DNA of 64,000 bases, from the sequence record MW812342.1; one strand, 5' to 3'. Below are positions 1 to 12,137 of this stretch, piece by piece. How positions within the stretch are numbered: the first letter of the stretch is position 1; the number at the start of each line of letters is the position of its first letter. Made by a program: the position numbers and the translations under genes. The notes under the pieces are model-generated. The model was given only the letters and a program-made list of their open reading frames with translations, did not search any database and was not told the origin of the DNA.

Positions 1-192
1 CCGGTCTGTGTGAACACGCCGTACTCCCACGCAGAGATTGCGGTCATCGGCGAACTGATTCGTACCGAGGCTCGGATTCGCAATCCTAACTTCGGGAAGT
101 ATTACACCGTGCCCGAATCAAAAAAATAATATTTTTTACAAACCGGGGTGTTCCTGTGTTCAAACCCAATCACCAGCACTAGGGAAATCATC

Positions 193-375
193 ATGACACC
201 AGAACAACGTCGCCGCCGCGACGAGGAAGAACGCCGTCGTCGCCAGTCCTCACAACGCGGTTACACGCCGGGTTATACCCCGGTCGATGATTCGCCGTAC
301 TACGGCGGAGATGATTCGTCACCTTCGGGTTGCGATTCCGGTTCTGACAGCGGCGGTTCTTGCGGCTGCGACTAA
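193..375 (+). CDS. small hypothetical protein, Arg-rich N-terminus and Ser/Gly/Asp-rich C-terminus
   Basis: ATG at 193 after AGGGAAA (track start 148 probably too long); MTPEQRRRRDEEERRRR...SGCDSGSDSGGSCGCD. Confidence 0.6.
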   Translation: MTPEQRRRRDEEERRRRQSSQRGYTPGYTPVDDSPYYGGDDSSPSGCDSGSDSGGSCGCD

Positions 376-387
376 GCGAGATAAACC

Positions 388-876
388 ATGACCACGATTG
401 CGTACGACGGAAAAACACTGGCGTCCGATAGCCAGTCGACTCAGGGTAACATCCGCGTGTCGAACTCTGCCATGAAAATCTTCGCCCGTGGTGAAGGTGA
501 CGATTGGTCTATCGAGGGAAAACGTATCGCGGCTTTCGGTGTGGCGGGTAATCTCCACGATGCCAAAGACCTGCGCCAGCGAATGTCATCGTTTGTCGGA
601 CACCATTCCGGTGACCACTTCGAGAACGGCTCCACGTTCGCGTTCATTGCAATCGCTGAAGACCACACCGTGTTCGTTGGCGGGAAGTATTCCGACGAAC
701 CACGTTCGTGGGTCATGGAAGCCGAAGCGCCGGTAGCGGTCGGTAGCGGTGGTGACTTCGCCCTCGGGGCCATGGCTGCCGGGGCAAAAGCCGAGGATGC
801 CGTTCGCATCGCTTCGAAGTTTGACGTGAACACCAATGACAGTGTCTCGTCCATCGATTGCTGGGGTAACACATGA
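388..876 (+). CDS. HslV/proteasome-beta-like Ntn-hydrolase
   Basis: N-terminal M-T-T-I (Thr nucleophile after Met removal), ASDSQST, MKIF (Lys) and AVGSGG motifs of the proteasome-beta/HslV fold. Confidence 0.75.
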   Translation: MTTIAYDGKTLASDSQSTQGNIRVSNSAMKIFARGEGDDWSIEGKRIAAFGVAGNLHDAKDLRQRMSSFVGHHSGDHFENGSTFAFIAIAEDHTVFVGGKYSDEPRSWVMEAEAPVAVGSGGDFALGAMAAGAKAEDAVRIASKFDVNTNDSVSSIDCWGNT

Positions 877-1208
877 GCAAAGAAAAAGTTCAACCGGAAC
901 TGGTGTTTGATTTTGCGTATCCGCTCGATGAGGCATGCGCGATTCTGGGGAATACCCGCGTACCAAAAATCGCGGCGCTGACGGATGTCGTTTCCACCGT
1001 CCAGTTTCACATGTGGGCTGCAACCGATTTGGTAACTGTGATGGTTCTGTCGAAAGACGGCGATGCCACGACGGTAAATACTTACCAAGGCTATAGTCCT
1101 GTAACCAAAATCGAATCCATCAACAACGCCATGGAGCAAGCACTCAAGACTGCATTGAAGTCTTGGGCCTATCTTCAGACGCGCAATTTGAGCGACGCGG
1201 TAGTCTAA
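873..1208 (+). CDS. hypothetical protein
   Basis: 111-aa ORF coupled by ATGA overlap to the upstream gene. Confidence 0.65.
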   Translation: MSKEKVQPELVFDFAYPLDEACAILGNTRVPKIAALTDVVSTVQFHMWAATDLVTVMVLSKDGDATTVNTYQGYSPVTKIESINNAMEQALKTALKSWAYLQTRNLSDAVV

Positions 1209-1231
1209 TTACAAGACTACCCTGTTGTATG
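1202..1231 (+). promoter_or_regulatory. putative phage promoter for tRNA transcript (AGTCTAATTACAAGA-N11-TATG)
   Basis: 15-bp exact repeat of 4376-4390 with TATG at the same offset; lies just before tRNA-Trp. Confidence 0.5.
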
Positions 1232-1255
1232 CTGAGAAGCACGTAATTGAATTCT

Positions 1256-1331
1256 AGGGGAGTAGCTCAGCTGGCAGAGCACCGGTCTCCAAAACCGGGT
1301 GTCCAGAGTTCGAATCTCTGTTCCCCTGCCA
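1256..1331 (+). tRNA. tRNA-Trp (CCA)
   Basis: AGGGGAG/TTCCCCT acceptor, CCGGT-CTCCAAA-ACCGG anticodon arm, TTCGAAT T-loop, encoded CCA; 76 nt. Confidence 0.95.
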
Positions 1332-1395
1332 AATTTAGCCAGCAAGAATGTGAGAAACCGCGGAAGACCAAATAGTCAATCGCTGGAGAATTCTC

Positions 1396-1617
1396 ATGAA
1401 CTTGTATTTGCTTGAACGTCAAGACGATGTCGGTTACGACGAGTTTGATTCCATAGTCGTTGCAGCTCCCTCGGAAGCTGTGGCGCGCGCAATTCGTCCA
1501 AGGGGTGGTTGGGTGTACGGTGAGGCATGGGATGAGGCGGAAACGCTGACCTGCACAAACATCGGAACCACACACCTCCCAATCGGTATTGTTCATGAAT
1601 CGTTTAATGCAGGCTGA
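1396..1617 (+). CDS. small hypothetical protein between tRNAs
   Basis: 73-aa ORF with GGAG Shine-Dalgarno. Confidence 0.65.
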   Translation: MNLYLLERQDDVGYDEFDSIVVAAPSEAVARAIRPRGGWVYGEAWDEAETLTCTNIGTTHLPIGIVHESFNAG

Positions 1618-1645
1618 ATAGGTGGGCTTCGGCCCACCAAACTCT

Positions 1646-1720
1646 GGGGCGCTGGCCGAGTGGCTTAGGCGCAGGATTGCAAATCCTGTTACCGCGGTTC
1701 AATTCCGCGGCGTCCCTCCA
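1646..1720 (+). tRNA. tRNA-Cys (GCA)
   Basis: GGGGCGC/GCGTCCC acceptor, CAGGA-TTGCAAA-TCCTG anticodon arm, U discriminator plus CCA. Confidence 0.95.
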
Positions 1721-1858
1721 AATACCCTGTCTCGCCCGACAGGATTTCTTTACAAAAACCCGTAGAGCCTTTCGGGGGTGAAGCCAGTTGGAGTGTTGCT
1801 ACTCTACGGTCTTCTACTCCTGGGCGCTGGCTCACCCACCTAAAGGATAAAAAGAATT

Positions 1859-2284
1859 ATGTTCGGTCTTTTCAAAAAACGCGCTAACCGTGCTATGTCT
1901 GAAATCAAAAAATTCGACAAACGTGACCTGGCAGAAGCCGTGGTTAACGCCGCTTACCTGATTGCGTACGCAGACGGCGAGCTGGAATCTTCTGAGAAAG
2001 CGAAAATCGATCAGGTGCTGCGCGCCAACCCGGTACTGTCTAACTTCCAGTCCGAGCTGAACGCAATTGCTTCTACTATCATCGCTCAGCTGGAAGCGGA
2101 CATCGACATCGGCCGTCGTGCTGCCCTGCGCCAGATTGCTGATGTGAAAGGCGACCAGCGCGAGTGTGAAGACGTTCTGGATGTTGCTGTGGCTATTGCC
2201 CGTGCTGATGGCGAAATCGAACCGGCAGAAGTTGAAATGCTGAAACAGATCGCCGAAGCGCTGGGTCTGCGTTACGACGCGTAA
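1859..2284 (+). CDS. terB: TerB-family (tellurite resistance-like) protein
   Basis: Two A(D)G-x-x-x-x-E repeats (IAYADGELESSE, IARADGEIEPAE) and all-helical pattern typical of TerB; AAGGA SD. Confidence 0.8.
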   Translation: MFGLFKKRANRAMSEIKKFDKRDLAEAVVNAAYLIAYADGELESSEKAKIDQVLRANPVLSNFQSELNAIASTIIAQLEADIDIGRRAALRQIADVKGDQRECEDVLDVAVAIARADGEIEPAEVEMLKQIAEALGLRYDA

Positions 2285-2287
2285 GCC

Positions 2288-2470
2288 ATGAAGCTGAAAA
2301 CCAAGTTATACATCGTGGCCGCGTTGCTGCTGATGCTGCTTGGCAACTTCGTTGGGCGTGCCTTCACGTTAATCGCCTACGTAGCTGTAATCGGCGTAGT
2401 AGCCTATCTGGTCTGGCCTGTCATCAAGAGGTTTGCGGCGAAGTCGCAGGCGAAGGTGAAAGGCAAGTAG
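2288..2470 (+). CDS. small membrane protein
   Basis: 60 aa, two hydrophobic segments followed by a basic tail; starts 3 nt after terB stop. Confidence 0.65.
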   Translation: MKLKTKLYIVAALLLMLLGNFVGRAFTLIAYVAVIGVVAYLVWPVIKRFAAKSQAKVKGK

Positions 2471-2476
2471 TAATTC

Positions 2477-2514
2477 GGTGCGGGGGTCGTTCCCTCCGCA
2501 CCACCCTTTTCTTC
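2477..2514 (+). terminator. putative intrinsic terminator/attenuator
   Basis: GGTGCGGGGG...CCCTCCGCACC hairpin followed by CTTTTCTTCT. Confidence 0.5.
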
Positions 2515-2536
2515 TCATCTAAAAATAGGTATAACC

Positions 2537-3376
2537 ATGAGAAAGGTGCTTTTCGGAATACTTGCAGCGTTGACGTTTAGCATGTCCGCCGTCGCGGCAG
2601 ACGAAGTAGTCATTACCACAGGACAGCAGGGCCTGACCTATAACTCGGTCTATGGCGTTAATCTGGCCGGTGCTATCAGCGAGTTCGGTACTCGTGCACG
2701 GGTCATCCCGTCGAAGGGGTCATTAGATAACCTCGACAAAGTTGCCGCAGGTGAAGCCCAGATTGGTTTCACGCAGGCAGATGCTTTCCAGTTCTGGCGC
2801 GCTAAGCACCCGAACGAAGCGCAGAACGTTGACATCGTCGGTCAGCTGGCCCGCGAATGTGTGTGGGTCGCTGTCAAGAAAGACGGCAAGGTCAAAGATG
2901 CGAAAGATTTAACCGATGGCGCGAAAATCGCCGTGGGTGAACCGGACTCCGGCTCGTACGCCAGTTGGCAATACCTGCAACAGTTGGTGAAAGAGTATTC
3001 CAAAGCGGAAACTTACGCCAAGGGTGGCATCCGTTCGTTGTCCAAAGTGGCAACGGGTGAATACGATGCGTTCCTGTGGGTGTCTGCGCCGGATAAAGGC
3101 AACAAATTCCTCGAAGCGGTCAATCAAGACAGTTCTGGTTTAGAGCTGATTGACATGAGCACATGGAACGTCAACGACAAACTGCCTAACGGCCAGTCGG
3201 TCTACACGAAAGAAACGGCCAAGACAGACAAGACCGCGTTCTTCGGTAAGAAAGTTGACGTCCCGTGCACCACCACACTCGTCGTGGCCAACACTGACGC
3301 CGGTGATGATCTGCTCGAAACCGTTTCTACCATCCTCCTGAAAAACAATTCACGAGTGATGGGGGACAAAAAATAA
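2537..3376 (+). CDS. TAXI-family (TRAP-like) periplasmic solute-binding protein
   Basis: Signal peptide ending AVAA; ITTGQQGLTY, SKGSLDNL, IGFTQADA and IAVGEPDSGS match TAXI-type binding-protein motifs. Confidence 0.75.
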   Translation: MRKVLFGILAALTFSMSAVAADEVVITTGQQGLTYNSVYGVNLAGAISEFGTRARVIPSKGSLDNLDKVAAGEAQIGFTQADAFQFWRAKHPNEAQNVDIVGQLARECVWVAVKKDGKVKDAKDLTDGAKIAVGEPDSGSYASWQYLQQLVKEYSKAETYAKGGIRSLSKVATGEYDAFLWVSAPDKGNKFLEAVNQDSSGLELIDMSTWNVNDKLPNGQSVYTKETAKTDKTAFFGKKVDVPCTTTLVVANTDAGDDLLETVSTILLKNNSRVMGDKK

Positions 3377-3384
3377 AAATATGT

Positions 3385-3995
3385 ACTGACCCAGTGCATC
3401 TTTTCGGGCTGGGTAGGGTTGATGTCCCTACCTGCGCGGTGTTCGTTAAGGCTGGTAACGTTCGCTGAGACCTGTCGCATACCCGTAAGTCGGCAGTAGC
3501 CGGTTACACAAAAGACTATCGCGTAAGCTGTGAAGTTTCCCCGGTAGGTAACCGACCGTTCACGATTTCATTAGGTGAGCAAATAATCTATGCAAGGACT
3601 TCTAGGATTTGTGCTCGACATGATGGGTAGCTTACGCCGCCTCATCAAGCAGTTACGAATCTGGAAGCTTGCCCATTACTGGTTTACAGGCGAAAAGGCT
3701 TCTCGTGAGAGAGCCACATGCAAACTGCGTATTTACATTAGTATGTTCACGGCTGTGAGCATAGGTCAAGCACCGGAACGATAAGCCGGACAGCTACGCC
3801 TGTAAAATACAATCTGAAAATCATAATGGGATTAAGTTCCCAGATTTGAAAAGGCGACTGTGTGTCGTCGGCGATAACCCCCTGTCGTGGACCAGGTTAT
3901 CCCAAAGGTAATGTGAAAGGGGTTGGTGCTTGGAGGCGCTAAGACCGGCGGATACGCTGGCTCAGAAGAAGAAGTCCATCAACCCCATTCTCACC
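3385..3995 (+). ncRNA. candidate large (~600 nt) structured non-coding RNA
   Basis: No convincing ORF; long-range helices 3521-29/3629-37, 3683-92/3797-3806, 3873-79/3895-3901 and 3919-28/3977-86 plus several local hairpins. Confidence 0.5.
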
Positions 3996-4046
3996 TAAGT
4001 GACTCTTTTACAAGATGTTACTTATATATGCGAAAGCGAGGTGAAC

Positions 4047-4373
4047 ATGGGAACGTATCGTGAAGGCCCTGAAAGCACGGTGACTCACCGTAGTCATGAT
4101 TACTCTGTGGATGCATTGCTGGATATAGCGGAACGTCATAGCCTCGTTCAAATTCCAGTGTCTAGGATAGAATGGATTTTAAACGAGACTACGCTCGAAG
4201 ATGAGCGAGTTAAGAGTGCAGATACAGATTATCCCATTATTGTGCTGCACGAAGGAAGTTTGTATATTGTATTAGACGGTGCCCATCGCCTTGCGAAGGC
4301 GGTTGCCGAAGGCAAGGATACCATTGCAGCCAAGATACTTGTGCCTGCTAATCTACCGAAACCGGTACGATAA
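4047..4373 (+). CDS. ParB/sulfiredoxin-like domain protein
   Basis: PIIV...IVLDGAHRLAKA motif (DG-x-HR); ATG 4047 follows GAGGTG SD. Confidence 0.7.
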   Translation: MGTYREGPESTVTHRSHDYSVDALLDIAERHSLVQIPVSRIEWILNETTLEDERVKSADTDYPIIVLHEGSLYIVLDGAHRLAKAVAEGKDTIAAKILVPANLPKPVR

Positions 4374-4375
4374 AA

Positions 4376-4405
4376 AGTCTAATTACAAGAATACACTGTA
4401 TTATG
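4376..4405 (+). promoter_or_regulatory. putative phage promoter for main tRNA cluster
   Basis: AGTCTAATTACAAGA identical to 1202-1216, with TATG 26 nt from motif start in both copies. Confidence 0.5.
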
Positions 4406-4492
4406 TCGGAAACCCGATTTGATGTTGCACAGGGCGTTACGCTGCGGCGTTTGCCGGTGTGCAGGGTTAGGTCGGGATTCTGGCACCTATTC

Positions 4493-4577
4493 GGCGGGTT
4501 ACTCAAGCGGCAACGAGAGCAGACTGTAAATCTGTTGACTTCGGTCTTCGGTGGTTCGAGTCCACCACACGCCACCA
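4493..4577 (+). tRNA. tRNA-Tyr (GTA)
   Basis: GCAGA-CTGTAAA-TCTGT anticodon arm, long variable arm, TTCGAGT T-loop, ACCA end; one G.A mismatch in acceptor. Confidence 0.92.
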
Positions 4578-4583
4578 AACAGT

Positions 4584-4658
4584 TGGGGTATAGCCAAGCG
4601 GTAAGGCCCAGGGCTTTGATCCCTGTATGCCTAGGTTCGATTCCTAGTGCCCCTGCCA
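4584..4658 (+). tRNA. tRNA-Gln (TTG)
   Basis: CAGGG-CTTTGAT-CCCTG anticodon arm, TTCGATT T-loop, GCCA end. Confidence 0.92.
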
Positions 4659-4664
4659 AACAAC

Positions 4665-4747
4665 GGAAGTAAAGCTCGCTGCTTCGGAAACTCATGGTGA
4701 AAAACCCGTGACCTTCCAGGCCGGTGCTATACCGGATGCTTCCACCA
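4665..4747 (+). ncRNA. degenerate tRNA-like RNA (non-canonical D/T loops, 8-nt anticodon loop)
   Basis: 7-bp acceptor GGAAGTA/TGCTTCC plus ACCA; TCATGG/CCGTGA arm; CCGG/CCGG T-like arm with TGCTATA loop. Confidence 0.65.
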
Positions 4748-4753
4748 AACAAT

Positions 4754-4973
4754 GGTACCTGTCACAGCAGCCCTTGAGGCTTACGCGAAGATGACTGGCC
4801 GCCCATTTTTACCGGGTAACACATTCCTGCCTGCGTGCTATTGCCGCTAAGGTTTGTCCCTGGTGTCGTGCGTCATTCGGGTCTACCCATGCTCTGCGGA
4901 GTGTGCGCTGATGTCTCGATAAACGCCATAGGGCCGCCTTGAGAACTCCGTGGAATTCGGAGGGGTACCACCC
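4754..4973 (+). ncRNA. tmRNA-like cloverleaf RNA with ~125-nt insert in place of anticodon loop
   Basis: GGTACCT/GGGTACC 7-bp acceptor plus A-CC; CTCCG-TGGAATT-CGGAG T-arm directly 5' of the acceptor strand; helix 4797-4804/4931-4938. Confidence 0.6.
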
Positions 4974-5048
4974 ATTCTTGTGTTTCCTTATCCTGAAGAC
5001 ATTCGTAAGACAAATCTATTCATGGTCGAGGAAGCACAGAACCCATTT

Positions 5049-5123
5049 AGGACTGTAGTTCAGTGGGAGAACGCCGCCCTGTCACGGCGGAGGTCGCGGG
5101 TTCGAAACCCGTCAGTCCTGCCA
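5049..5123 (+). tRNA. tRNA-Asp (GTC)
   Basis: AGGACTG/CAGTCCT acceptor, CCGCC-CTGTCAC-GGCGG arm, GCCA end. Confidence 0.95.
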
Positions 5124-5131
5124 GTTTCAAA

Positions 5132-5207
5132 TGCGTCTTAGCTCAGTTGGTAGAGCGCACCCCTGATAAGGGTGAGGTCACTGGTTCAAGTCCAGTAGAT
5201 GCAACCA
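5132..5207 (+). tRNA. tRNA-Ile (GAT)
   Basis: CACCC-CTGATAA-GGGTG arm, canonical D/T loops, ACCA end; 76 nt. Confidence 0.95.
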
Positions 5208-5213
5208 AACAAC

Positions 5214-5291
5214 GGTGTATGTAGTTCAGTTGGTTAGAATTCCGGCTTGTGACGTCGGAGGTCGAGAGTTCAAGTCTCTCCATACACCCCA
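5214..5291 (+). tRNA. tRNA-His (GTG)
   Basis: TTGTGAC anticodon loop, G-1:C73 His identity pair, CCA end. Confidence 0.95.
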
Positions 5292-5296
5292 TTTGC

Positions 5297-5372
5297 ATTC
5301 CCGTCATCTAGTTGGTTAGGATACGACACTTTCACTGTCGGTACACGAGTTCGAGTCTCGTCGGGAATACCA
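5297..5372 (+). tRNA. tRNA-Glu (TTC)
   Basis: ATTCCCG/CGGGAAT acceptor, CGACA-CTTTCAC-TGTCG arm, ACCA end. Confidence 0.95.
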
Positions 5373-5503
5373 TGTTATCCTCACGTAAATCATCGCCGGT
5401 GAGGGGTAAGGCAAGCTCCTGCCCCAATCCCATAATTACATCTCGGCTAAACACCGGGCGCTGTTGGTGTAGATGATACCCACTGGGTGTGAGGGGCCTA
5501 AAC

Positions 5504-5593
5504 GGAGAATTGACTGAGCGGCTAAAGGTGCTCCCCTGCTAAGGGAGTGTATGCGCAAGTGTACCATTGGTTCGAATCCAATATTCTCCGCCA
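5504..5593 (+). tRNA. tRNA-Ser (GCT)
   Basis: CTCCC-CTGCTAA-GGGAG arm, long variable arm, G discriminator plus CCA; 90 nt. Confidence 0.95.
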
Positions 5594-5769
5594 TGTTCTC
5601 TTGCTGTGGGAAATAGAAGCGAACGTAGAAACGCCGGTTAGCTCAAAGCTTAGAGCGTCTCATCTTCGGATGAGAAGGTTGGGGGTGCAACCCGAATTCC
5701 CTATCGGCAACGGCCTGCTTGTCAGGATTAGAAACATCTACGTGGATGGGAACTTCTACAGCAAGAACA
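5594..5769 (+). ncRNA. anticodon-less tRNA-like domain capping a long stem
   Basis: Cloverleaf 5633-5708 (GCTC/GAGC D-arm, TCTCATC-TTCG-GATGAGA arm) enclosed by helices 5623-29/5737-43 and 5600-11/5754-65. Confidence 0.6.
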
Positions 5770-5771
5770 AA

Positions 5772-5970
5772 ACAGTGGGAGCATTGTCCACTGTGACACC
5801 GGCAAAGGTTTCGTACCTTGCAGGTTGGGCGGAAGCCCGATGTTCCCCCGAACGCTGGCCTTCTGGCCGATACAGTGAAAGCTTACCCATGCCGTTGATC
5901 ACCTCTTCTGCTGCTGCCAACACACTGTATCACCGGAATCAGTCCTGCCTTAAATGGCAAGCGTTCACCC
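5772..5970 (+). ncRNA. candidate multi-helix structured RNA domain
   Basis: ACAGTGG/CCACTGT, GGGC-GGAA-GCCC, GAACGCT/AGCGTTC (5850/5960) and GATACAGTG/CACTGTATC (5869/5923). Confidence 0.45.
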
Positions 5971-5974
5971 ATTC

Positions 5975-6052
5975 GGTTCCCCAAGGCGGCTTGGGACATT
6001 ATCTCTCGGCTCTGTTGGGTAATGTCGTGGTTCAACTCCACAGGAATCACCA
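5975..6052 (+). ncRNA. degenerate tRNA-like RNA
   Basis: GGTTCC/GGAATC acceptor plus ACCA, GTGG-TTCAACT-CCAC T-arm, ACATTA/TAATGT arm with 18-nt loop. Confidence 0.5.
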
Positions 6053-6058
6053 AACAAT

Positions 6059-6127
6059 GGCCTCTCGCGATGGTGTGCTAAAAGCGCTTTATTGTGCTGC
6101 TAGGATGGTTCGAATCCGTCAGAGGCA
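6059..6127 (+). pseudogene. pseudo-tRNA (canonical T-arm, 6-nt anticodon loop, no CCA)
   Basis: GCCTCT/AGAGGC acceptor, GATGG-TTCGAAT-CCGTC T-arm, AGCGC-TTTATT-GTGCT arm. Confidence 0.5.
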
Positions 6128-6128
6128 A

Positions 6129-6204
6129 GAGCACCGCTGTTAAGCTGGTTAACACCCGACTCATAATCGGATATTCGCACGTTCGATTCGTGTCGGTGCT
6201 CGCC
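6129..6204 (+). tRNA. tRNA with CAT anticodon (Met or Ile2), atypical
   Basis: CCGA-CTCATAA-TCGG arm, GCACG-TTCGATT-CGTGT T-arm, 8-bp GAGCACCG/CGGTGCTC acceptor, ends GCCC. Confidence 0.8.
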
Positions 6205-6212
6205 CTTTTTTA

Positions 6213-6288
6213 GACTCTGTAGCTCAGTTGGTAGAGCGGATGACTGTTAATCATCAGGTCACAGGTTCAAGCCCTGTCAGAGTCGCCA
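6213..6288 (+). tRNA. tRNA-Asn (GTT)
   Basis: GACTCTG/CAGAGTC acceptor, GATGA-CTGTTAA-TCATC arm, GCCA end; 76 nt. Confidence 0.95.
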
Positions 6289-6559
6289 CATTTTGCATTG
6301 CCCGAGTCCCGAATGACATTCCGGAAAAATATCATCCATGGTCAAGGGCAGTGCAGAACCAAATTCCCGGCCCTTGCAGATAAAGCTTACCTGCATTAGC
6401 TGTCCCCTGCGGGGGTCGGGTACCACCTTTGTTCGTTTTGTTTTTTTCTTTCAATTGCCTGGCGGTATTGGTGGGAACAAAACGAATGAAGCCCTAGCGG
6501 GGGAAAAGCCGCTAACAACAACAGAAGCAGTAAAAACAGAAGTAAAAGCAGGAGTAGTT

Positions 6560-7372
6560 ATGTTTACTATCTTACGTAAAATCAATGGTAACCGCACACC
6601 AACCGAACACGAATCCCCAACGCTGGGTGATACGAAGTCACAAGTGTTCAAAGATGCGATGTCGCTTCTTACCGAATCCAACAACGTGCATAATTGCATG
6701 GATTCTGGAATGGATGCGAAGCCGTGGATTAACGGCAAATCTAAGCCTGTTGAAGAATGGGTAGAGCGCTTTAAGAAAGCGTTTGAGGTGGTCGACCCTG
6801 ACCCACAAGAGCTTATCGATCTGGTAAGTGAACTTTCTCCAGGAATGTTTGACAAAGCAAATGCGCGTTTTGCATCTCACTTTGGTCAGGTAGAAGATGC
6901 CTTCCTGAGAGACACCGGGCAAACCATCATCTGGTTAATACCTAAAGGTACCCCGATCGATAGCCAGTTCAAAGACATTCCACGCCAGTCTGTTGAAACC
7001 CTCCACACTACACTCGATTTCATCGAAGCTGATGAGATGAAGTTTGCTGTGTTCAATAGCAAGGCATTGTGGGATGGGTATAACTCCGCTGAACTGTTTG
7101 GCGGTGTAGCCACCGAGATTTCCTCGGTAGAACTCCAGCACATCTATCACGACGATATGGCGATGCCGCAAGAAGCGGTACTCAAAGCCAGCCGTCGGGG
7201 TGACCGTACGATGGAGCAGGTCATCGGGGTCCTTGCTTATGGCAACTCCGAAGAACCCGACCCTACCACGGGCAATGTGCCGGTCACAGTGATGACCTAC
7301 GAGTTTATCTACCAAGGCGATGAAGTCTACGTTACGAACCGTCACGGTAAGACAGTGGACTCCATCCGTTAA
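6560..7372 (+). CDS. hypothetical protein
   Basis: ATG 6560 after AGGAG SD (track start 6338 runs through structured non-coding sequence); 270 aa. Confidence 0.75.
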   Translation: MFTILRKINGNRTPTEHESPTLGDTKSQVFKDAMSLLTESNNVHNCMDSGMDAKPWINGKSKPVEEWVERFKKAFEVVDPDPQELIDLVSELSPGMFDKANARFASHFGQVEDAFLRDTGQTIIWLIPKGTPIDSQFKDIPRQSVETLHTTLDFIEADEMKFAVFNSKALWDGYNSAELFGGVATEISSVELQHIYHDDMAMPQEAVLKASRRGDRTMEQVIGVLAYGNSEEPDPTTGNVPVTVMTYEFIYQGDEVYVTNRHGKTVDSIR

Positions 7373-7476
7373 AGCATTAGCATGCTCGCTAATACCCGCC
7401 CTGAGGATTGGCCTCCTCGTGCTTGAAGGGCGACTCTCCTGTAGTACGCTTTGTAAGTCGACGTAAAATCGGTACG

Positions 7477-7519
7477 CCCTCTCCCCGAAAAGGGAGAGGG
7501 TAGTATCGTATATTTTTTT
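7477..7519 (+). terminator. intrinsic terminator
   Basis: CCCTCTCCC-CGAAAA-GGGAGAGGG with a downstream T-tract. Confidence 0.65.
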
Positions 7520-7525
7520 GGATAT

Positions 7526-7540
7526 ATATTACCTAGGTGA
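7526..7540 (+). promoter_or_regulatory. putative early (virion RNAP) promoter ATATTAYCNNNGTGA
   Basis: ATATTACCTAGGTGA; one of six copies in the window; resembles phiKZ early TATATTAC motif. Confidence 0.7.
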
Positions 7541-7589
7541 GATTAAACTATAATCTTTAACCTATCATTAGACTTTCGAGGATAAACTT

Positions 7590-8573
7590 ATGCATTACGC
7601 TCCAATGTCAGCACATGAAACCTTCGCCGCTCGTGGATACAGTCCAGAAGAAGGTAAACGTATTCGCGGCTATCTTCCGCGCCGCTTTGGCGATATCAGT
7701 AATGCCCTGCCCCTGACAAACGCTGAGTTCTGGCTGGCGTACGAGTGCATGAAGCACTACAATGACAATAGCCGCGAGCGTGGCCGCTTCTACGCCGCAG
7801 GTCCATTCAACTTCCAATCTAACGGGAAGGTCAACTATCGTTCTGAAAAGCTTAACGAAGATTTCTCCATGGTGGAATTCATCCGCCACTTTGGGGACAC
7901 GGTGTTCACCGACTTCGATGCTGAGTTAGGCATGAAAGTTCCACGCACTAATGCGGACGGTTCGTTGGTCATGAAGAACCGTATGGTGGCCACGCGTTTG
8001 GTCGAGATTGAGAAACAGGCACAACCGCAATCTGAAGACTTCTCAAGCTGGCACACCGCAAGCTGGATGAACTTCCCCGTCGGGTCACTCTCTCTACCGC
8101 CGACAGGTAACATTACACCCGAAACGGTATTGATGGCATCCCTGCACGGTACGATGGTACAAGAGTATGTTAATACGCAGGCCGGACGTATGTTGCATCC
8201 AACCCTTGATTATAAATGGGTGGCAACTTATGTCTATCTGAAACGCCTGTATCATGCGCGCGACCGTCAGTTCGGTCAGGACTACCATGGCATTCGTAGC
8301 ACGATTGAGATGAACCTACGCTTCCGTACAAGCACCGCCATGTACCCAAGCGATGTCATGACGCCGCCGCACTACTTCCACATCGATGCGGATCGCGTTA
8401 TGACTGCAAACGGTATCATGAATTTCCCACGTTTACACAATACAAAACCCATGGGCTTTTACGAGTCCATGTACCGCTTCAACAACAACGGCCATGTCGC
8501 CGCCATCACAACCATCCCCACTGAACTTTTCGATGAGTACAGTGAAGAGGATTGGAAAGCAGTTTTAGCATAA
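7590..8573 (+). CDS. hypothetical early protein
   Basis: 327-aa ORF, GAGGA SD, downstream of the early-promoter motif. Confidence 0.8.
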   Translation: MHYAPMSAHETFAARGYSPEEGKRIRGYLPRRFGDISNALPLTNAEFWLAYECMKHYNDNSRERGRFYAAGPFNFQSNGKVNYRSEKLNEDFSMVEFIRHFGDTVFTDFDAELGMKVPRTNADGSLVMKNRMVATRLVEIEKQAQPQSEDFSSWHTASWMNFPVGSLSLPPTGNITPETVLMASLHGTMVQEYVNTQAGRMLHPTLDYKWVATYVYLKRLYHARDRQFGQDYHGIRSTIEMNLRFRTSTAMYPSDVMTPPHYFHIDADRVMTANGIMNFPRLHNTKPMGFYESMYRFNNNGHVAAITTIPTELFDEYSEEDWKAVLA

Positions 8574-8578
8574 CTTCA

Positions 8579-8609
8579 AAGCGGGATTAAAACCCCGCTT
8601 TATTTTTTT
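8579..8609 (+). terminator. intrinsic terminator
   Basis: AAGCGGG...CCCGCTT followed by TATTTTTTT. Confidence 0.65.
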
Positions 8610-8644
8610 ACTTGAATTCCTGATTTATATAGGAGGGTAACATC

Positions 8645-9085
8645 ATGAAATCCAATTTGGCACACAGCTTTAACATCGTCCCGTTCTACCAACCAATCGA
8701 AATGACCCGTGCGTTAACCGATGGTTATCTGCCAGAAACTTTTATACCCAAAGGTCGCTACGACGAAATGTTGTTGGAGACGATATTCCCTATTATCACC
8801 TCTCATCCGCTGTTCAGAGAGTTTTCGTCTAAGCTGGCGTACCAAGACGGTACGGCTTTCCGTAAGGGTGAAGATGTTCCGGTGATTACCACCACGTACA
8901 ATATCTCACGAGAAGAAGCAGCCGCTATGGAGCATGACCCGGATGTATTCTTCCGGTTCATGAAGTCAATGGCCGAAGCCCTCGAAAAACGAGCCCTGCC
9001 GTTCGAGGAAATCTTCGCTGTTCTTCTTGACGCTATCTGCGCAAGTGACTTTGCCATGTTCCACAACATGAGCAGTCTGCACTAA
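8645..9085 (+). CDS. hypothetical protein
   Basis: 146 aa, AGGAGG SD. Confidence 0.75.
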   Translation: MKSNLAHSFNIVPFYQPIEMTRALTDGYLPETFIPKGRYDEMLLETIFPIITSHPLFREFSSKLAYQDGTAFRKGEDVPVITTTYNISREEAAAMEHDPDVFFRFMKSMAEALEKRALPFEEIFAVLLDAICASDFAMFHNMSSLH

Positions 9086-9151
9086 AAATTACGCCAGAGT
9101 CCCTCCCTATAGGGAATCTGTGCCTGTATAGATTCCAATAGGAGATGAACC

Positions 9152-9538
9152 ATGAAGACGACACTGCGTCCGATGGACGTGATTCTCGCTCACCCCGACA
9201 CGCTCAGCAAAATCGCACCCCAGTCAGAACTCGACCGCCGTTTATTAGAAAGCCTAGAATGGGGATTTACTCTCCACCCAGATGAGGTTTCCAACACACG
9301 CGTTCTCGATGTTACTGACGAAGTGGTCATTGACTGGACTGAGCGCGAAGGTTGTGACGATGTGCGAGAGTACGTGGCGCAAGCAACGGTACCCCCACGC
9401 GTACCCATCGCTGGATTGGCAGAACACACCATTTCTCTGCGCCGTTTATGCAACGCTCAAGACGAGATTGTTCGCAACGGTGAAGCGTGGAGCTATGGTA
9501 CCGCCAGTCACCTGAAGAACGTGCTGCTTCAGGCGTAA
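9152..9538 (+). CDS. hypothetical protein
   Basis: 128 aa, AGGAG SD. Confidence 0.75.
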   Translation: MKTTLRPMDVILAHPDTLSKIAPQSELDRRLLESLEWGFTLHPDEVSNTRVLDVTDEVVIDWTEREGCDDVREYVAQATVPPRVPIAGLAEHTISLRRLCNAQDEIVRNGEAWSYGTASHLKNVLLQA

Positions 9539-9590
9539 AAAAGAAAAGAAGATAACCCCTGCCGATGCAGGGGTTGGTCTTTCTTTTTTT
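9539..9590. terminator. bidirectional terminator
   Basis: AACCCCTGC-CGAT-GCAGGGGTT flanked by A-run and T-run between convergent genes. Confidence 0.75.
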
Positions 9591-9592
9591 GT

Positions 9593-10405
9593 CTACGATT
9601 TGAAACGACCACCGGACATGTAGTTGTAGCGGTTGCCGATGTCGTCGTTGTGAACCAGCGCGCGCTTCATCGCAGGCAGTGTGTCATCGAACATCTGCCC
9701 GGCATCCGAATACCCTTCCACCACGCTACGGAATGCACCAAACTCCATACCGTTCTCAATCTTCCCGGAATCCATATCGAAGATGAGTTGGTTATAGATG
9801 TATTGTTTGGTGGCAAAGACCGCCAAGTCAGCGACACGCGGATAGAAAGGAGTCTTGATTTCGTTCAGTTCTTCACTGAGCTTATACATGATCGCAATCT
9901 TCGTGGCGTAGACAAACATGCCGGGGTCTTTAATCTTGATGGTGTTCGGTCCCAGCACACGCACCTCGGGAGAACTGATACGCGGTAAGGCTGAGTTCGA
10001 ATCGACCACTAACTGCGTCGCGGCGAGCGCACCGGTGGTGGCCCCATCCAGATACGAGCCCGCAGGCGGGAGTGTATACGCCTGACCGGCCACCGGCGTA
10101 ACTGCGATGTGCGCTTCGAGGATTTCGCGGCCACCCGTTTTAAATTCATCGATGTGGTAAATGCGCGAGTAGTAGTCTTCCGTATCGTTCTCATAGGGCA
10201 GCCCCTGTAAATCAAGTTCGGTATATTGCCCCATGCGGGACACTTCGGGAATCACATACTCACGAATCACTTTATCCATGATTTCGTTTTCGATGCTACT
10301 GGCCACGCCCAACATCCGGAGGTTCTCTGGTGTAAAGGCGACTTTCAGCAGCGGTAAAGGAATGTCTCGCCGGATTTTGCGGAGACAATAATCTATCACG
10401 TTCAT
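9593..10405 (-). CDS. conserved jumbo-phage protein, probably virion structural
   Basis: 270-aa ORF with GGAG SD on the minus strand; position fits phiKZ-like layout; function inferred only. Confidence 0.65.
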   Translation of the reverse strand: MNVIDYCLRKIRRDIPLPLLKVAFTPENLRMLGVASSIENEIMDKVIREYVIPEVSRMGQYTELDLQGLPYENDTEDYYSRIYHIDEFKTGGREILEAHIAVTPVAGQAYTLPPAGSYLDGATTGALAATQLVVDSNSALPRISSPEVRVLGPNTIKIKDPGMFVYATKIAIMYKLSEELNEIKTPFYPRVADLAVFATKQYIYNQLIFDMDSGKIENGMEFGAFRSVVEGYSDAGQMFDDTLPAMKRALVHNDDIGNRYNYMSGGRFKS

Positions 10406-10528
10406 TTTGGGCTCCAGAGTGGCGTTAGGCAGCTTTCATAGCATGGGTAGTGGGGTAGGATAGGTTATAGTAAAAAATACGCTATATGGCTATTATGTGC
10501 GTACCACAGTCTAATTATTTTGACATAG

Positions 10529-10543
10529 ATATTATCTTTGTGA
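10529..10543 (+). promoter_or_regulatory. putative early promoter
   Basis: ATATTATCTTTGTGA upstream of the 10568-17045 operon. Confidence 0.7.
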
Positions 10544-10567
10544 CGAATCCATAAGGAGTATCTACTC

Positions 10568-10840
10568 ATGACGCGGGTGTTCTTTGAACTGAACTTGAAA
10601 ACCAAGCGCGGTTACATCGGTCCCCACTGGATTATCATCAACGCAATTCAAGAACTCATCTATCCGGGAACGTTTAACCTCGACAAACCTTTACTGGATC
10701 GAGCCGAGGAATATTTCGGTACGGATGCTTGGTACATGATTGCAAAGTTGGGTCCGAACCACCGTCATCCATTTATTTACCACAACGGGGTTGTAGAAAC
10801 ATGGTCAAGCTATACATCAAACCAGCTGATGTGCATGTAA
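10568..10840 (+). CDS. hypothetical protein
   Basis: 90 aa, AAGGAG SD. Confidence 0.7.
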   Translation: MTRVFFELNLKTKRGYIGPHWIIINAIQELIYPGTFNLDKPLLDRAEEYFGTDAWYMIAKLGPNHRHPFIYHNGVVETWSSYTSNQLMCM

Positions 10841-11454
10841 GCTTTTGGGGTGAGGTAGACAAAACGCCGTATGTGCAAGCATTACGCATGTCTGAGATGC
10901 AACGTCAGGAAGTGACAGTGCAGCTCCTCCACACCGCATTAGAACATATCTTCCTTTCGCTCGAGGAGATGCCTTTCGCTCAGCTGCATGACCACCTTGA
11001 GAAGTACGTTGATCAGGTGTTGTTGCACAAACTCCTGCATCACGATAAGAAAATGGAAGAACCCGAAATCATTCGCGGACGAACCCGTATTGTGACGGAA
11101 ACCATGTTCGGTAACGACATCCTCGACACCCGACTGGTTGACCGTGTTGTTTACGCAACCATCCGCGAACTGATTGATGTGGCCTTCGGTGAAATCTTCA
11201 ACAAGTTCGTAGACCAGATTGAATCGATGATTGAAGAATCGTGCAAACTGTGTAAGCGCAAGTTCAACCGTTATTCGATTGTGACCATCACGCCGCGTAT
11301 TGGTGCTCGTGCGAAGCTTGTTTGTTTGGAACTCGAACTGGGTGATGATATTCGACATGTCTACTTCAATCAGCGTTTCCCAACCGGGCGGTATAGTTCA
11401 GATAACGATGATAAAATTCGTGACCTGCAAAGCCTACTTCCGAATATTGGCTGA
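10801..11454 (+). CDS. hypothetical protein
   Basis: Probable start MVKLYIK at 10801; part of a tightly coupled operon. Confidence 0.7.
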   Translation: MVKLYIKPADVHVSFWGEVDKTPYVQALRMSEMQRQEVTVQLLHTALEHIFLSLEEMPFAQLHDHLEKYVDQVLLHKLLHHDKKMEEPEIIRGRTRIVTETMFGNDILDTRLVDRVVYATIRELIDVAFGEIFNKFVDQIESMIEESCKLCKRKFNRYSIVTITPRIGARAKLVCLELELGDDIRHVYFNQRFPTGRYSSDNDDKIRDLQSLLPNIG

Positions 11455-11776
11455 GGAAGAAGGACTTAGCAGTTACGATGTGCAGGTCTTGCTCAAGGAT
11501 ATTATCCTCGACCTGTTCAACTATCTGTTGTCGGGCTTCAATCCCACGGGTTCATGGGATGGCACTGCGGTGACGGTCATTGTGCGCGCTACGCGTCCAA
11601 AGACCACAACTAATCAGGCCAATAACTGGGCACGCCATGTTCGTCGCGCGATCTGCGAAGAACTGAACGTCCCCGCCAAAGGGTATCGGTTATGGCTGTC
11701 TGTGACCGATGAGTTTATCCGTTTTATCCCGTATAAGGATCAGGAGTATGAAAACGCTTTACTTCGAGTTTCCTGA
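11408..11776 (+). CDS. hypothetical protein (start uncertain)
   Basis: Fills the gap between neighbours in the coupled operon; ATG 11408 in frame with the track ORF. Confidence 0.55.
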   Translation: MIKFVTCKAYFRILAEEEGLSSYDVQVLLKDIILDLFNYLLSGFNPTGSWDGTAVTVIVRATRPKTTTNQANNWARHVRRAICEELNVPAKGYRLWLSVTDEFIRFIPYKDQEYENALLRVS

Positions 11777-12137
11777 AACTTATCGCGAGATTAATCGGGT
11801 GCTCGAGAAATTTACAAATAAAAACTATTTTGATGACCCGGATACCATCGATCATTACATCGAAATGCTTGTCCGCATGGAGACCCATCGGCGCTTGTAT
11901 AGTGCGGATATCGGTGCCCTGAAAAAGTGGATGCGCAGTGAGATTATTCGGTGGCCGGTTTCTGACGACTACTTCTCCAATAACACGGTGCAGTTATACA
12001 TTATTGAGTCTTCGGATCTTTGGGCTGCGATAGACAAAGAGATGACCATCACGCCCAATCCCGACTTCATCATGTGGCATGTTGAGCGTGGTGTGTGGAA
12101 AATGATTACTTCAGGAGTCAACCTTTATGTTAAGTAA
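11748..12137 (+). CDS. hypothetical protein
   Basis: MKTLYFEF start preceded by CAGGAGT SD (track ORF 11709..12137). Confidence 0.65.
   Translation: MKTLYFEFPETYREINRVLEKFTNKNYFDDPDTIDHYIEMLVRMETHRRLYSADIGALKKWMRSEIIRWPVSDDYFSNNTVQLYIIESSDLWAAIDKEMTITPNPDFIMWHVERGVWKMITSGVNLYVK

Follow-up and report, generated by a model that had tools for sequence, protein, structure and literature searches.

The RNA locus in the tRNA island of phage pEa_SNUABM_10

The window analyzed here, a stretch of 64,000 nucleotides (nt), is the start of the genome of Erwinia phage pEa_SNUABM_10 (MW812342.1, 238.9 kb), a jumbo phage of the genus Machinavirus; the 671 nt of 3377-4047 agree with this complete genome by 100% and have the same coordinates in it. 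The coding sequence (CDS) of a TAXI-like solute-binding protein with a Pfam match to NMT1_3 ends at position 3376, and the CDS of a protein annotated as ParB-like in relatives starts at position 4047. The gap of 670 nt between them agrees with the more than 600 nt given in a preliminary description that had been made from the sequence letters. The sole GenBank entry in this gap is a hypothetical protein of 64 amino acids (3590-3784). Eleven transfer RNA (tRNA) genes on the plus strand, identified with ARAGORN and Rfam cmscan between positions 1256 and 6288, surround the gap as a tRNA island, so that the association with a phage tRNA locus was confirmed. On the strength of the sequence comparisons reported below, positions 3404-3992 are a genuine new structured-RNA locus, which is real and strongly conserved. 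The parts of the locus are a 5' module, a central part with a small open reading frame (ORF), and a 3' domain (Table 1).

The plus strand of 3404-3992 folds with -209.4 kcal/mol (z score of -3.93), and none of 100 dinucleotide shuffles was as stable. The minus strand forms a less stable fold (z score of -2.56); this difference and the frequent G-U pairs support the plus strand as the identity of the RNA. The whole region contains 69 base pairs, 30 of them with a compensatory change. The heavily structured RNA that had been proposed is in agreement with these data, as a conserved plus-strand RNA of about 590 nt. All eight helices listed in the preliminary description were found in the window where it had placed them; four of them hold, two are lineage-specific, one has an arm that was probably assigned to the wrong partner, and one is ambiguous.

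A function at the level of the DNA, for instance as a replication origin, packaging site or recombination hotspot, is hardly credible. The region is located near the arbitrary start of many genome records, is intergenic, and is rich in inverted repeats, but the compensatory changes keep the pairing and not the sequence, and the models described below match the plus strand only. On the minus strand, many of the G-U pairs would turn into A-C mismatches, GNRA loops are present, and the position in the genome record varies by lineage, being at 167 kb in phage RAY, for example.

Table 1. Coordinates of the features of the RNA locus in the window; the two strands of a helix are separated by a slash.
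Feature	Position	Strand	Remarks
5' module	3404-3566	+	Putative autonomous structured RNA, about 160 nt (130-160 nt across lineages); model R1
H1 hairpin	3410-3418/3426-3434	+	Conserved loop YUGRURU
H2	3436-3440/3555-3559	+	Closes multi-way junction
Optional variable hairpin	3444-3447/3457-3460	+	In the junction
H3	3472-3478/3489-3496	+	Conserved 13-nt loop GCAnACCnnUAAGUC, conserved AGAC flanking
H4	3501-3507/3548-3554	+	
A-rich bulge	between H4 and H5	+	ACAAARNA, 8 nt
H5	3516-3519/3544-3547	+	
GUGA-capped hairpin	3520-3543	+	AAGCU-GUGA-AGUUU, formed by a 17-nt insert in H5; clade of the window
Linker	3567-3589	+	Motif AUUMGRUGAG (mini-hairpin and Shine-Dalgarno-like purines) before the ORF start; from alignments
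Small ORF	3590-3784	+	64 codons, ATG start, stop TAA (3782-3784) in hairpin loop
P-long, 5' strand	3656-3690	+	ORF codons 23-34; likely duplex of about 30 imperfect bp with 3813-3848
GNRA-capped hairpin	3697-3715	+	GGCUUCUC-GUGA-GAGAGCC, inside the ORF; Machinavirus, Seoulvirus
Stop-codon hairpin	3761-3804	+	Three tiers, stop in loop; alignment A9
Stop-codon hairpin, outer tier	3761-3766/3798-3803	+	AUAGGU/GCCUGU; covaries (CG/AU, AU/GC, GC/UA)
Stop-codon hairpin, middle tier	3769-3771/3793-3795	+	AGC/GCU
Stop-codon hairpin, inner tier	3774-3777/3785-3788	+	CGG/CCG
P-long, 3' strand	3813-3848	+	Has an alternative local fold
Alternative local fold	within 3813-3848	+	AAUCUG/CAGAUU and invariant hairpin UGGGA-UURAGU-UCCCA (3827-3843)
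3' domain	3848-3996	+	About 145 nt; model R2
Hairpin GGCGAC/GTCGTC	3853-3858/3864-3869	+	Conserved loop UGUGU; 98% paired, 5 of 6 pairs covary
Variable cassette hairpin	3870-3903	+	GATAACC/GGTTATC in the window; swapped between lineages
Closing helix	3915-3931/3972-3990	+	13-16 bp, contains GGGGTTGGTG/CATCAACCCC; covariation
Inner hairpin	3945-3950/3955-3960	+	GAUA loop (CGCG or other elsewhere)
Invariant single strands	in the 3' domain	+	CUUGGAG, GCGCUAAGA, AGAAGAAGAAGUC (3964-3976)
TATATATG	4023-4030	+	Downstream of the RNA, 17 nt before the ParB-like start codon; resembles phiKZ-type late promoter

Conservation and distribution

A blastn search with the region gave matches in 50 to 62 phage records, with an alignment over the full length in the close relatives of the window. 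The 3' block (about 3767-3990) was 70 to 84% identical in other Machinavirus phages and in the Seoulvirus group with SPN3US, SEGD1, the Escherichia coli phages Lh1B and EC001, and Proteus phage 7. A shorter blastn match only was obtained for Erskinevirus and Wellingtonvirus. When the whole intergenic stretches were compared, about 585 nt (3409-3992) could be aligned across these four SPN3US-like genera, plus related metagenomic contigs, with variable hairpins separating the conserved blocks. BLASTN and nhmmer searches across phages and metagenomes thus yielded homologues with compensatory changes in four genera. All four share the same order and spacing of the three parts, and the RNA locus is always on the strand of the tRNAs, upstream of tRNA-Tyr and in the same tRNA-cluster context.

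The IMG/VR database and metagenomes were scanned with patterns drawn from the conserved motifs, and the matches were filtered by nhmmer or a covariance model. About 12 further distinct members were found, all from the same phage group; the rest were chance matches. In 185,579 bacterial and archaeal genomes, the motif patterns produced chance matches only. As nothing outside this phage group came out of the scans apart from chance matches, the locus does not belong to bacteria or prophages. No match to the RNA was obtained in Serratia phage Moabite. The more distant phages Klebsiella FBKp24 and Pseudaeromonas KLEP7, which were reached via the TAXI-like neighbor, contained no homologue detectable by nhmmer, by the models R1, R2, and R3, or by Rfam. 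Their records contain Rfam tRNA-like matches that are absent from the annotation (5622-5718 in FBKp24, 4036-4107 in KLEP7). About 750 nt after the tRNA cluster of FBKp24 (5985-6733) are unannotated, and a weak YrlA-like match is located beside the suppressor tRNA of FBKp24.

With Rfam cmscan at gathering thresholds (4227 families, including ROOL, GOLLD, and OLE), only tRNAs were found in the whole window, and at E values of up to 10 the only match in 3300-4100 was a chance match to mir-511 on the minus strand. Full-text literature searches found no description of this RNA; the only mention in a 2026 review on jumbo phages is that phiKZ expresses non-coding RNAs. The possibility that a new family had been encountered, as initially suggested, is strengthened by these results.

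The 5' module

The covariance model R1 of the 5' module was built from alignment A4 and evaluated on 29 sequences. Standard pairs occupied 96.4% of the cells, and both sides were changed in 21 of 26 pairs. The covariation score was 0.691 compared to 0.225 in shuffled alignments, none of 500 of which reached the actual value, and to at most 0.108 in slid ones. Helix H2 was present as ACGGU/ACCGU, CCGGU/ACCGG, ACGGA/UCCGU, GCGAU/AUCGU or CGUAAU/AUUACG, as read from the alignments, and was missing from the RNAalifold result because its register shifts. To judge from this covariation, and from that of the 3' domain below, both parts fold into multi-helix structures.

In three further jumbo-phage lineages, the 5' module was found alone (E values with R1 between 1e-16 and 1e-24). 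These were Erwinia phages AH06 and RAY of the genus Agricanvirus, Salmonella phage SA002, Erwinia phage pEa_SNUABM_37, and L077, a contig from IMG/VR whose match was confined to the first 120 positions of the model and which R1 confirmed with an E value of 9e-23. According to blastn, the module is also present in all 16 other matching Agricanvirus records and is annotated in none of them. Neither the small ORF nor, in searches with R2 and R3, the mid domain or the 3' domain was found nearby in the lone-module lineages. Going by this distribution, the 5' module is an autonomous RNA element that stands alone near tRNA genes in other jumbo-phage lineages, and the single RNA of about 600 nt of the preliminary description is not supported as an indivisible unit, as its first 160 nt occur separately.

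The R1 match starts 12 nt (pEa_SNUABM_37) and 18 nt (SA002) after the annotated 3' end of a tRNA-Tyr. The gene 3' of the module varies by lineage and may be the small ORF, a gene for a P-loop protein, or another hypothetical gene. Within the regions compared, the P-loop protein gene is downstream of the module in AH06 and L077, and its homologue in SA002 and pEa_SNUABM_37 is upstream of tRNA-Tyr and module. Since the downstream gene differs between lineages, these data argue against a gene-specific leader and for an independent small RNA gene.

HDV-like (hepatitis delta virus-like) "theta" ribozymes are found just downstream of phage tRNAs. The short distance to tRNA-Tyr in these two phages and the highly conserved unpaired nucleotides of the module would also suit a self-cleaving or processing RNA that matures the neighboring tRNA. 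This is very unlikely, because no ribozyme of Rfam matched at E values of up to 10, the hairpin with a three- to four-way junction is unlike the HDV double pseudoknot, and most lineages have no tRNA immediately upstream of the module.

In the window, GCGTAAGCT may pair with AGCTTACGC (3521/3629), and the preliminary description had proposed a pseudoknot of this helix with the hairpin TGATGGG/CTCATCA. Both pairings are present in the window but are not conserved, because the 5' arm is in an insert that occurs in close relatives only and is absent from pSal-SNUABM-04. The motif AUUMGRUGAG of the linker was also found after the module in SA002 and pEa_SNUABM_37, where no ORF follows. About 3561-3612, from the linker into the first codons of the ORF, is the sole long stretch without predicted conserved pairs, leaving the start region accessible.

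Two further observations concern this module. The base of H3 (3464-3472 with 3496-3500), with GC-NNA-GA-C opposite G-N-A-GC, resembles by eye a kink-turn, and the internal loop contains a conserved G-A pair and a 3-nt bulge. In Erwinia phage RAY, 1.27 kb without an annotated gene (2405-3672 of the stretch L089) hold the module at 2492-2628; the remaining kilobase or so of this gap may contain further RNA elements or an unannotated gene.

The 3' domain

The covariance model R2 was built from alignment A6 and evaluated on 25 sequences. In this case, 94.0% of the cells were paired, 16 of 32 pairs displayed changes on both sides, and the score was 0.389 compared to 0.161 for shuffled and at most 0.095 for slid alignments. 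Searches with R2 found the domain only in the four genera. Covariation confirmed the pairing of GGGGTTGGTG with CATCAACCCC (3919/3977) as part of the closing helix, and the GGCGAC/GTCGTC helix was verified as a hairpin. The GATAACC/GGTTATC helix is a real hairpin, too, but belongs to a variable cassette that is exchanged between lineages. In pEa4, Caitlin, and L074, the bulge GCGCUA is changed to AGGUUC while AGAAG is changed to AACCG or AACUG; this joint change, seen by eye, hints at an extra pseudoknot-like pairing.

The phage pSal-SNUABM-04 and the metagenome contig L048 are otherwise nearly identical to the window but carry a cassette hairpin of the SPN3US/Asesino type (GGCGCGGTACC...GGTACGCC). 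This exchange at 3870-3903 indicates recombination between genera within the RNA. In Kwan, Wellington, and L024, the interior of the 3' domain, equivalent to 3929-3976, is replaced, with the 10-nt palindrome GCCCGCGGGC present and the AGAAGAAGAAGUC strand absent, and the outer helix is retained via fully compensatory changes (GGAGGGGAUG/CAUCCCCUCC).

The small open reading frame and the central part

The small ORF was open in all 26 distinct homologues, with 55 to 64 codons and with ATG and TAA aligned. Insertions and deletions were multiples of three, and the length classes between the conserved anchors (24, 25, and 26 codons) were all in frame. In the first 22 codons, the ratio of nonsynonymous to synonymous changes (pN/pS) was 0.00, 0.56, 0.56, 0.35, 0.00, and 0.29 in six clades; the nucleotide sequence of this part is poorly conserved, and no conserved pairs were predicted in it. 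The ratios for the remaining codons were 0.11, 0.93, 0.00, 0.81, 0.69, and 0.71. Substitutions followed the order third, first, second codon position in the N-terminal half only, and in the remaining codons the three positions changed about equally. Judged by these substitution patterns, the ORF is kept open by selection, with the N-terminal third under purifying selection, and its 3' two-thirds are constrained mainly as RNA. The claim of a purely non-coding RNA was thus contradicted by a conserved ORF with a coding signature. Translation of the region, with this ORF as the example and with conservation at the protein rather than the structure level, had been named as what would speak against the RNA. 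Since both levels are conserved, this objection is justified by one half.

The peptide matches phrog_26199, a family with no assigned function. Only six clusters of the peptide family were obtained by a profile search of 5.8 billion proteins; one of them is assigned to ChrisDB, a phage of this group, and four are from contigs of about 240-245 kb. A search for transcript-like contigs bearing the peptide gave a single, uninformative Logan contig of 1.1 kb, and no record of the SPN3US peptide was found. AlphaFold2 modeled a helix for residues 2-33 with a predicted local distance difference test score (pLDDT) of about 80 and a C terminus below 50. The predicted product begins with an amphipathic helix at its N terminus and continues as a basic, disordered tail. 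Two of its invariant residues, W25 and G34, are specified by the conserved sequences CUGG and CAGG, which are part of RNA helices.

The stop codon is located in the loop of a three-tiered hairpin. On alignment A9, 97.3% of the cells of this hairpin were paired compared to at most 53.5% when slid, and the outer tier reads ACAGGC/GCCUGU in Machina-2 and Seoulvirus and GAAGGU/ACCUUC in Erskinevirus and Wellingtonvirus. Upstream, the GTGA-capped hairpin at 3697-3715 holds in Machinavirus and Seoulvirus, with a compensatory change of CUC/GAG to CCC/GGG and the loops GUGA, GUAA or GCAA, but other hairpins take its place in Erskinevirus and Wellingtonvirus. The proposed helix of TTTACAGGCG and CGCCTGTAAA (3683/3797) is invariant in Machinavirus and Seoulvirus and absent in the other two genera, and each of its arms has a better-conserved alternative partner, which is AUAGGU (3761-3766) for the 3' arm. 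As a side observation, the stop-codon hairpin (3769-3795) resembles a tRNA anticodon arm. It was aligned by nhmmer to the anticodon arm of a tRNA-Arg, and the Machina-2 loop CUGCUAA fits C32-U33-NNN-A37-A38, with the "anticodon" positions varying between clades.

Alternatively, the locus could be an ordinary small-protein gene with the 5' module as a cis-acting leader, riboswitch-like or protein-binding, and the 3' domain as a stabilizing 3' untranslated region. The ORF is under selection, the module is located 24 to about 1000 nt upstream of a plus-strand gene in every lineage, and its conserved junction and loop nucleotides are typical of ligand- or protein-binding RNAs. We consider this explanation improbable nevertheless. 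The distances to the changing downstream gene are long and variable, the start region is not sequestered by conserved pairing, the module abuts a tRNA 3' end in two lineages, and the strongest conservation is in the RNA parts and not in the protein. Neither a constant class of downstream genes nor a terminator-like site after the module was found, as would be expected of a riboswitch.

A long-range duplex over the coding region

The long-range duplex, P-long, would connect codons 23-34 with the stretch just in front of the 3' domain. This pairing was possible in 15 of 15 lineages tested, with -21 to -37 kcal/mol and z scores of -3.1 to -8.8 compared to shuffles, and it is part of the minimum free energy fold of the window. 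In the fixed register, 82% of the cells pair compared to 34 to 48% when slid. The duplex is likely to be real but is unproven. Only one pair, 3670-3834 (UA versus CG), covaries clearly, accompanied by many one-sided changes among GU, AU, and GC. P-long competes with the local fold of AAUCUG/CAGAUU and UGGGA...UCCCA, and in Machinavirus and Seoulvirus only, with TTTACAGGCG/CGCCTGTAAA. The AAUCUG/CAGAUU helix, which had been listed as such, is ambiguous in this respect, as CAGATT may pair with either copy of AATCTG (3658 or 3811). The UGGGA/UCCCA helix never varies and is therefore neither supported nor refuted by covariation. An all-against-all covariation scan, which was too noisy with its 26 related sequences, gave no convincing inter-domain helix or pseudoknot.

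A conserved long-range pairing over a coding region is also what a type I toxin-like cassette of the hok kind would offer, in which translation of a helical, possibly membrane-active peptide is restrained by the folded messenger RNA (mRNA). A peptide of 55 to 64 residues with a 32-residue N-terminal helix in the AlphaFold2 model, from a small and narrowly distributed protein family, would fit into this picture. Such a cassette has little to recommend it nevertheless: the helix is amphipathic and charged and contains no hydrophobic transmembrane segment, neither an antisense RNA nor a promoter is evident, conserved pairing leaves the start region free, the locus belongs to lytic phages, and the flanking modules are conserved on their own and occur without the ORF.

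Promoter-like motifs and neighboring genes

The consensus of the phiKZ-type late promoter is T(-3)ATG(+1) (PMC7598289). The similar TATATATG in front of the ParB-like gene occurs as a single copy in the 64-kb window, which indicates that it is in this exact form not a general promoter motif, and its place is conserved in Machinavirus. It probably marks the next transcription unit, outside the RNA, a function attributed to it from the sequence. A conserved TAT(T)ATGTCGG precedes both the ParB-like gene and tRNA-Tyr (about 4397-4410) and resembles the phiKZ late promoter, and in Machina-2 phages, TATATATG overlaps the start codon of the small ORF.

The ParB-like gene (4047-4373), the product of which had no Pfam match at an E value of 0.1, is located between the RNA and tRNA-Tyr only in the sub-clade of pEa10, Machina, Huxley, Parshik, and pSal-SNUABM-04. 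In ChrisDB, pEa_SNUABM_4/9, and Caitlin, the RNA is followed by a spacer of about 170 nt and tRNA-Tyr, with no ParB-like gene between them. Because it is present at this site only in the sub-clade of the window, the gene looks like a recent insertion. In the SPN3US record, an opposite-strand hypothetical CDS, probably a spurious call, overlaps with a "tRNA-OTHER" (2925-2994) just downstream of the RNA.

Comparison with known RNAs

The T4 tRNA cluster contains two small structured RNAs directly after a tRNA, in the order tRNA-Arg, rnaD, rnaC, and these RNAs C and D, also known as species 1 and 2 RNAs, are cut out of the precursor transcript of the tRNAs. The 5' module is of similar size, with about 130-160 nt compared to 119-139 nt in T4, and follows tRNA-Tyr in SA002 and pEa_SNUABM_37 at the distances given above. 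On the other side of the locus, tRNA-Gly of Erskinevirus starts 7 nt past the closing helix of the 3' domain. In contrast to the RNA described here, rnaC and rnaD lack an ORF and have no other conserved domains attached. With the filters off, the best match of R1 in T4 68000-76000 had 3.5 bits and an E value of 1.4 and did not cover rnaC or rnaD as a whole; R3 gave no match.

ROOL (RF03087) and GOLLD (RF01998) are intricate phage or prophage RNAs of about 580-800 nt that are often located near tRNA islands, and GOLLD also has a better conserved 3' part and a more variable 5' part. In size, tRNA-island context, and phage origin, the locus agrees with what has been reported for both. It could accordingly be one indivisible, ornate non-coding RNA of this kind with about 590 nt, perhaps multimeric, and with an ORF that is incidental or a by-product. 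The fixed order and spacing of the three parts in four genera would be explained in this way, as would the pN/pS values near 1 that several clades show for the C-terminal two-thirds of the ORF, and the position of invariant residues on paired nucleotides. Self-complementary loops seen by eye, which were GAUAUC, GAUGUC, GGUAUC or GAUC in H1, CGCG in the 3' hairpin, and GCCCGCGGGC in Kwan, would suit a multimer. On the other hand, all 26 distinct homologues keep the ORF open, with frame-preserving indels, pN/pS is 0 to 0.56 in the poorly structured N-terminal third, the 5' module stands alone elsewhere, and the noisy scan revealed no covarying helix between the domains. The models of ROOL, GOLLD, and OLE (RF01071) did not match the locus in cmscan even at E values of up to 10. 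Moreover, ROOL and GOLLD are mainly from Firmicutes and environmental phages, compared to Enterobacterales jumbo phages here, and differ from the locus in its conserved ORF and in the module that exists on its own. All in all, an indivisible RNA is unlikely.

Structured RNAs that also encode a small peptide are known as dual-function RNAs, for instance RNAIII/hld of Staphylococcus and SgrS/SgrT of E. coli. The likeness consists of a structured RNA of several hundred nucleotides with many conserved hairpins and a small peptide ORF, and as judged from the alignments, the locus combines a covarying structure with apparent protein-level selection on the ORF. For an RNA role independent of the peptide, the one observation, an indirect one, is the occurrence of the 5' module without the ORF in other phages. 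RNAIII and SgrS are not homologous to the locus, pair with mRNAs, and have the ORF outside the main functional helices, whereas the ORF of the present locus passes through conserved helices and has its stop codon in a hairpin loop.

The trailer of the E. coli tyrT operon yields the RtT RNA (RF00391), which is processed from the tRNA-Tyr transcript and derives from tandem 178-bp repeats, together with the small basic Tpr peptide. The link to tRNA-Tyr is shared, as the locus precedes this tRNA in four genera and the module follows it directly in SA002 and pEa_SNUABM_37. Rfam gave no match to RtT, and no repeats were seen here, so that the parallel is one of context only.

Several other classes were considered and rejected. 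Transfer-messenger RNA (tmRNA) is also a structured RNA with an internal short reading frame, and its domains are rich in pseudoknots. A tRNA-like domain was not present, with ARAGORN (1-12000) and Rfam both negative, and the ORF has its own AUG with a Shine-Dalgarno-like sequence and 55 to 64 codons. No Rfam match at E values of up to 10 was obtained for RNase P RNA, group I or II introns, or known self-cleaving ribozymes, in agreement with the earlier failure to recognize signatures of group I introns, RNase P, or tmRNA by eye. An intron would split a host gene, but the genes on either side are complete and vary from genus to genus. A T-box was considered and rejected. By analogy, the locus is best placed with the tRNA-island-associated structured phage RNAs and the dual-function RNAs.

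Possible working of the locus

We read 3404-3992 as a plus-strand, modular, and bifunctional RNA of the tRNA island of SPN3US-like jumbo phages and regard this, with some reserve, as slightly more probable than its opposite. The locus would be transcribed with the tRNA island, and the RNA is probably processed out of the tRNA transcripts. The nucleases that mature the tRNAs would free it, with RNase P cutting at the 5' end of a tRNA that follows and the tRNA 3'-end processing activity acting after a tRNA that precedes, which would parallel the release of the stable RNAs C and D from the T4 tRNA cluster. The released RNA would be both a stable folded RNA and the mRNA of a small basic peptide; the ribosome, tRNA metabolism, a host nuclease or host defense may be its cellular target. 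A ribosome would have to unwind 3656-3690 and would stop in a hairpin loop, so that translation and the full fold would be mutually exclusive. This may make the center of the RNA a translation-sensitive switch or a double-stranded processing site. Phages related to phiKZ separate transcription from translation in a nucleus-like phage compartment. They transcribe, as in the case of SPN3US, with RNA polymerases of their own (PMC7598289). Both features together make classical transcription attenuation unlikely.

Several points weigh against a bifunctional RNA released in this way. The ends, abundance, stability, and unity of the RNA were all inferred by us, and R1 to R3 find no relation to rnaC and rnaD of T4, so that this parallel is by context only. 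The distance from the RNA to the nearest tRNA is 70 to 600 nt in Machinavirus, with promoter-like TATG motifs between them, which means that co-transcription with the tRNAs is not assured there. Double-sided covariation in P-long did not exceed that of shuffles, the support being the conserved pairing potential. The C-terminal half of the peptide is predicted to be disordered, and since the invariant residues W25, G34, A61, and P62 are encoded by RNA-constrained nucleotides, a function of the protein of its own is uncertain.

A further-reaching interpretation, which we rate as doubtful, is a new class of large bifunctional RNAs that is specific to phiKZ-related phages with multisubunit RNA polymerases. 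The product of the tRNA-island transcript would be a folded RNA, or a particle of RNA and peptide, that acts on translation or the tRNA machinery. In such a particle, the basic peptide would bind the RNA encoding it. The particle would, for example, capture ribosomes or tRNA-modifying or -cleaving enzymes, or escort tRNAs and mRNAs from the compartment. By analogy with ROOL and GOLLD, the RNA might assemble into a higher-order structure, and the 5' module would be the first known representative of a broader family of small jumbo-phage RNAs linked to tRNAs.

Significance

Large RNAs with strong covariation but no known function are seldom encountered, and ROOL, GOLLD, and OLE proved to form unprecedented RNA assemblies, in the case of ROOL and GOLLD homo-oligomeric nanocages made of RNA only. 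The RNA locus adds a new, unannotated family in well-studied and culturable jumbo phages such as SPN3US, RAY, Machina, and the E. coli-infecting Seoulviruses. Because these phages can be cultured, its function is directly testable by phage genetics, which is hard for RNA classes derived from metagenomes. The locus is also a clear example of a reading frame that passes through conserved RNA helices. For annotation, a defined RNA feature can take the place of "hypothetical protein" calls and of empty gaps at this site in more than 60 phage genomes. The separable module of 130-160 nt is present beside tRNA genes in at least seven jumbo-phage lineages. The locus also supports the old and unexplained observation, made with RNAs C and D of T4, that phage tRNA clusters carry extra stable RNAs.

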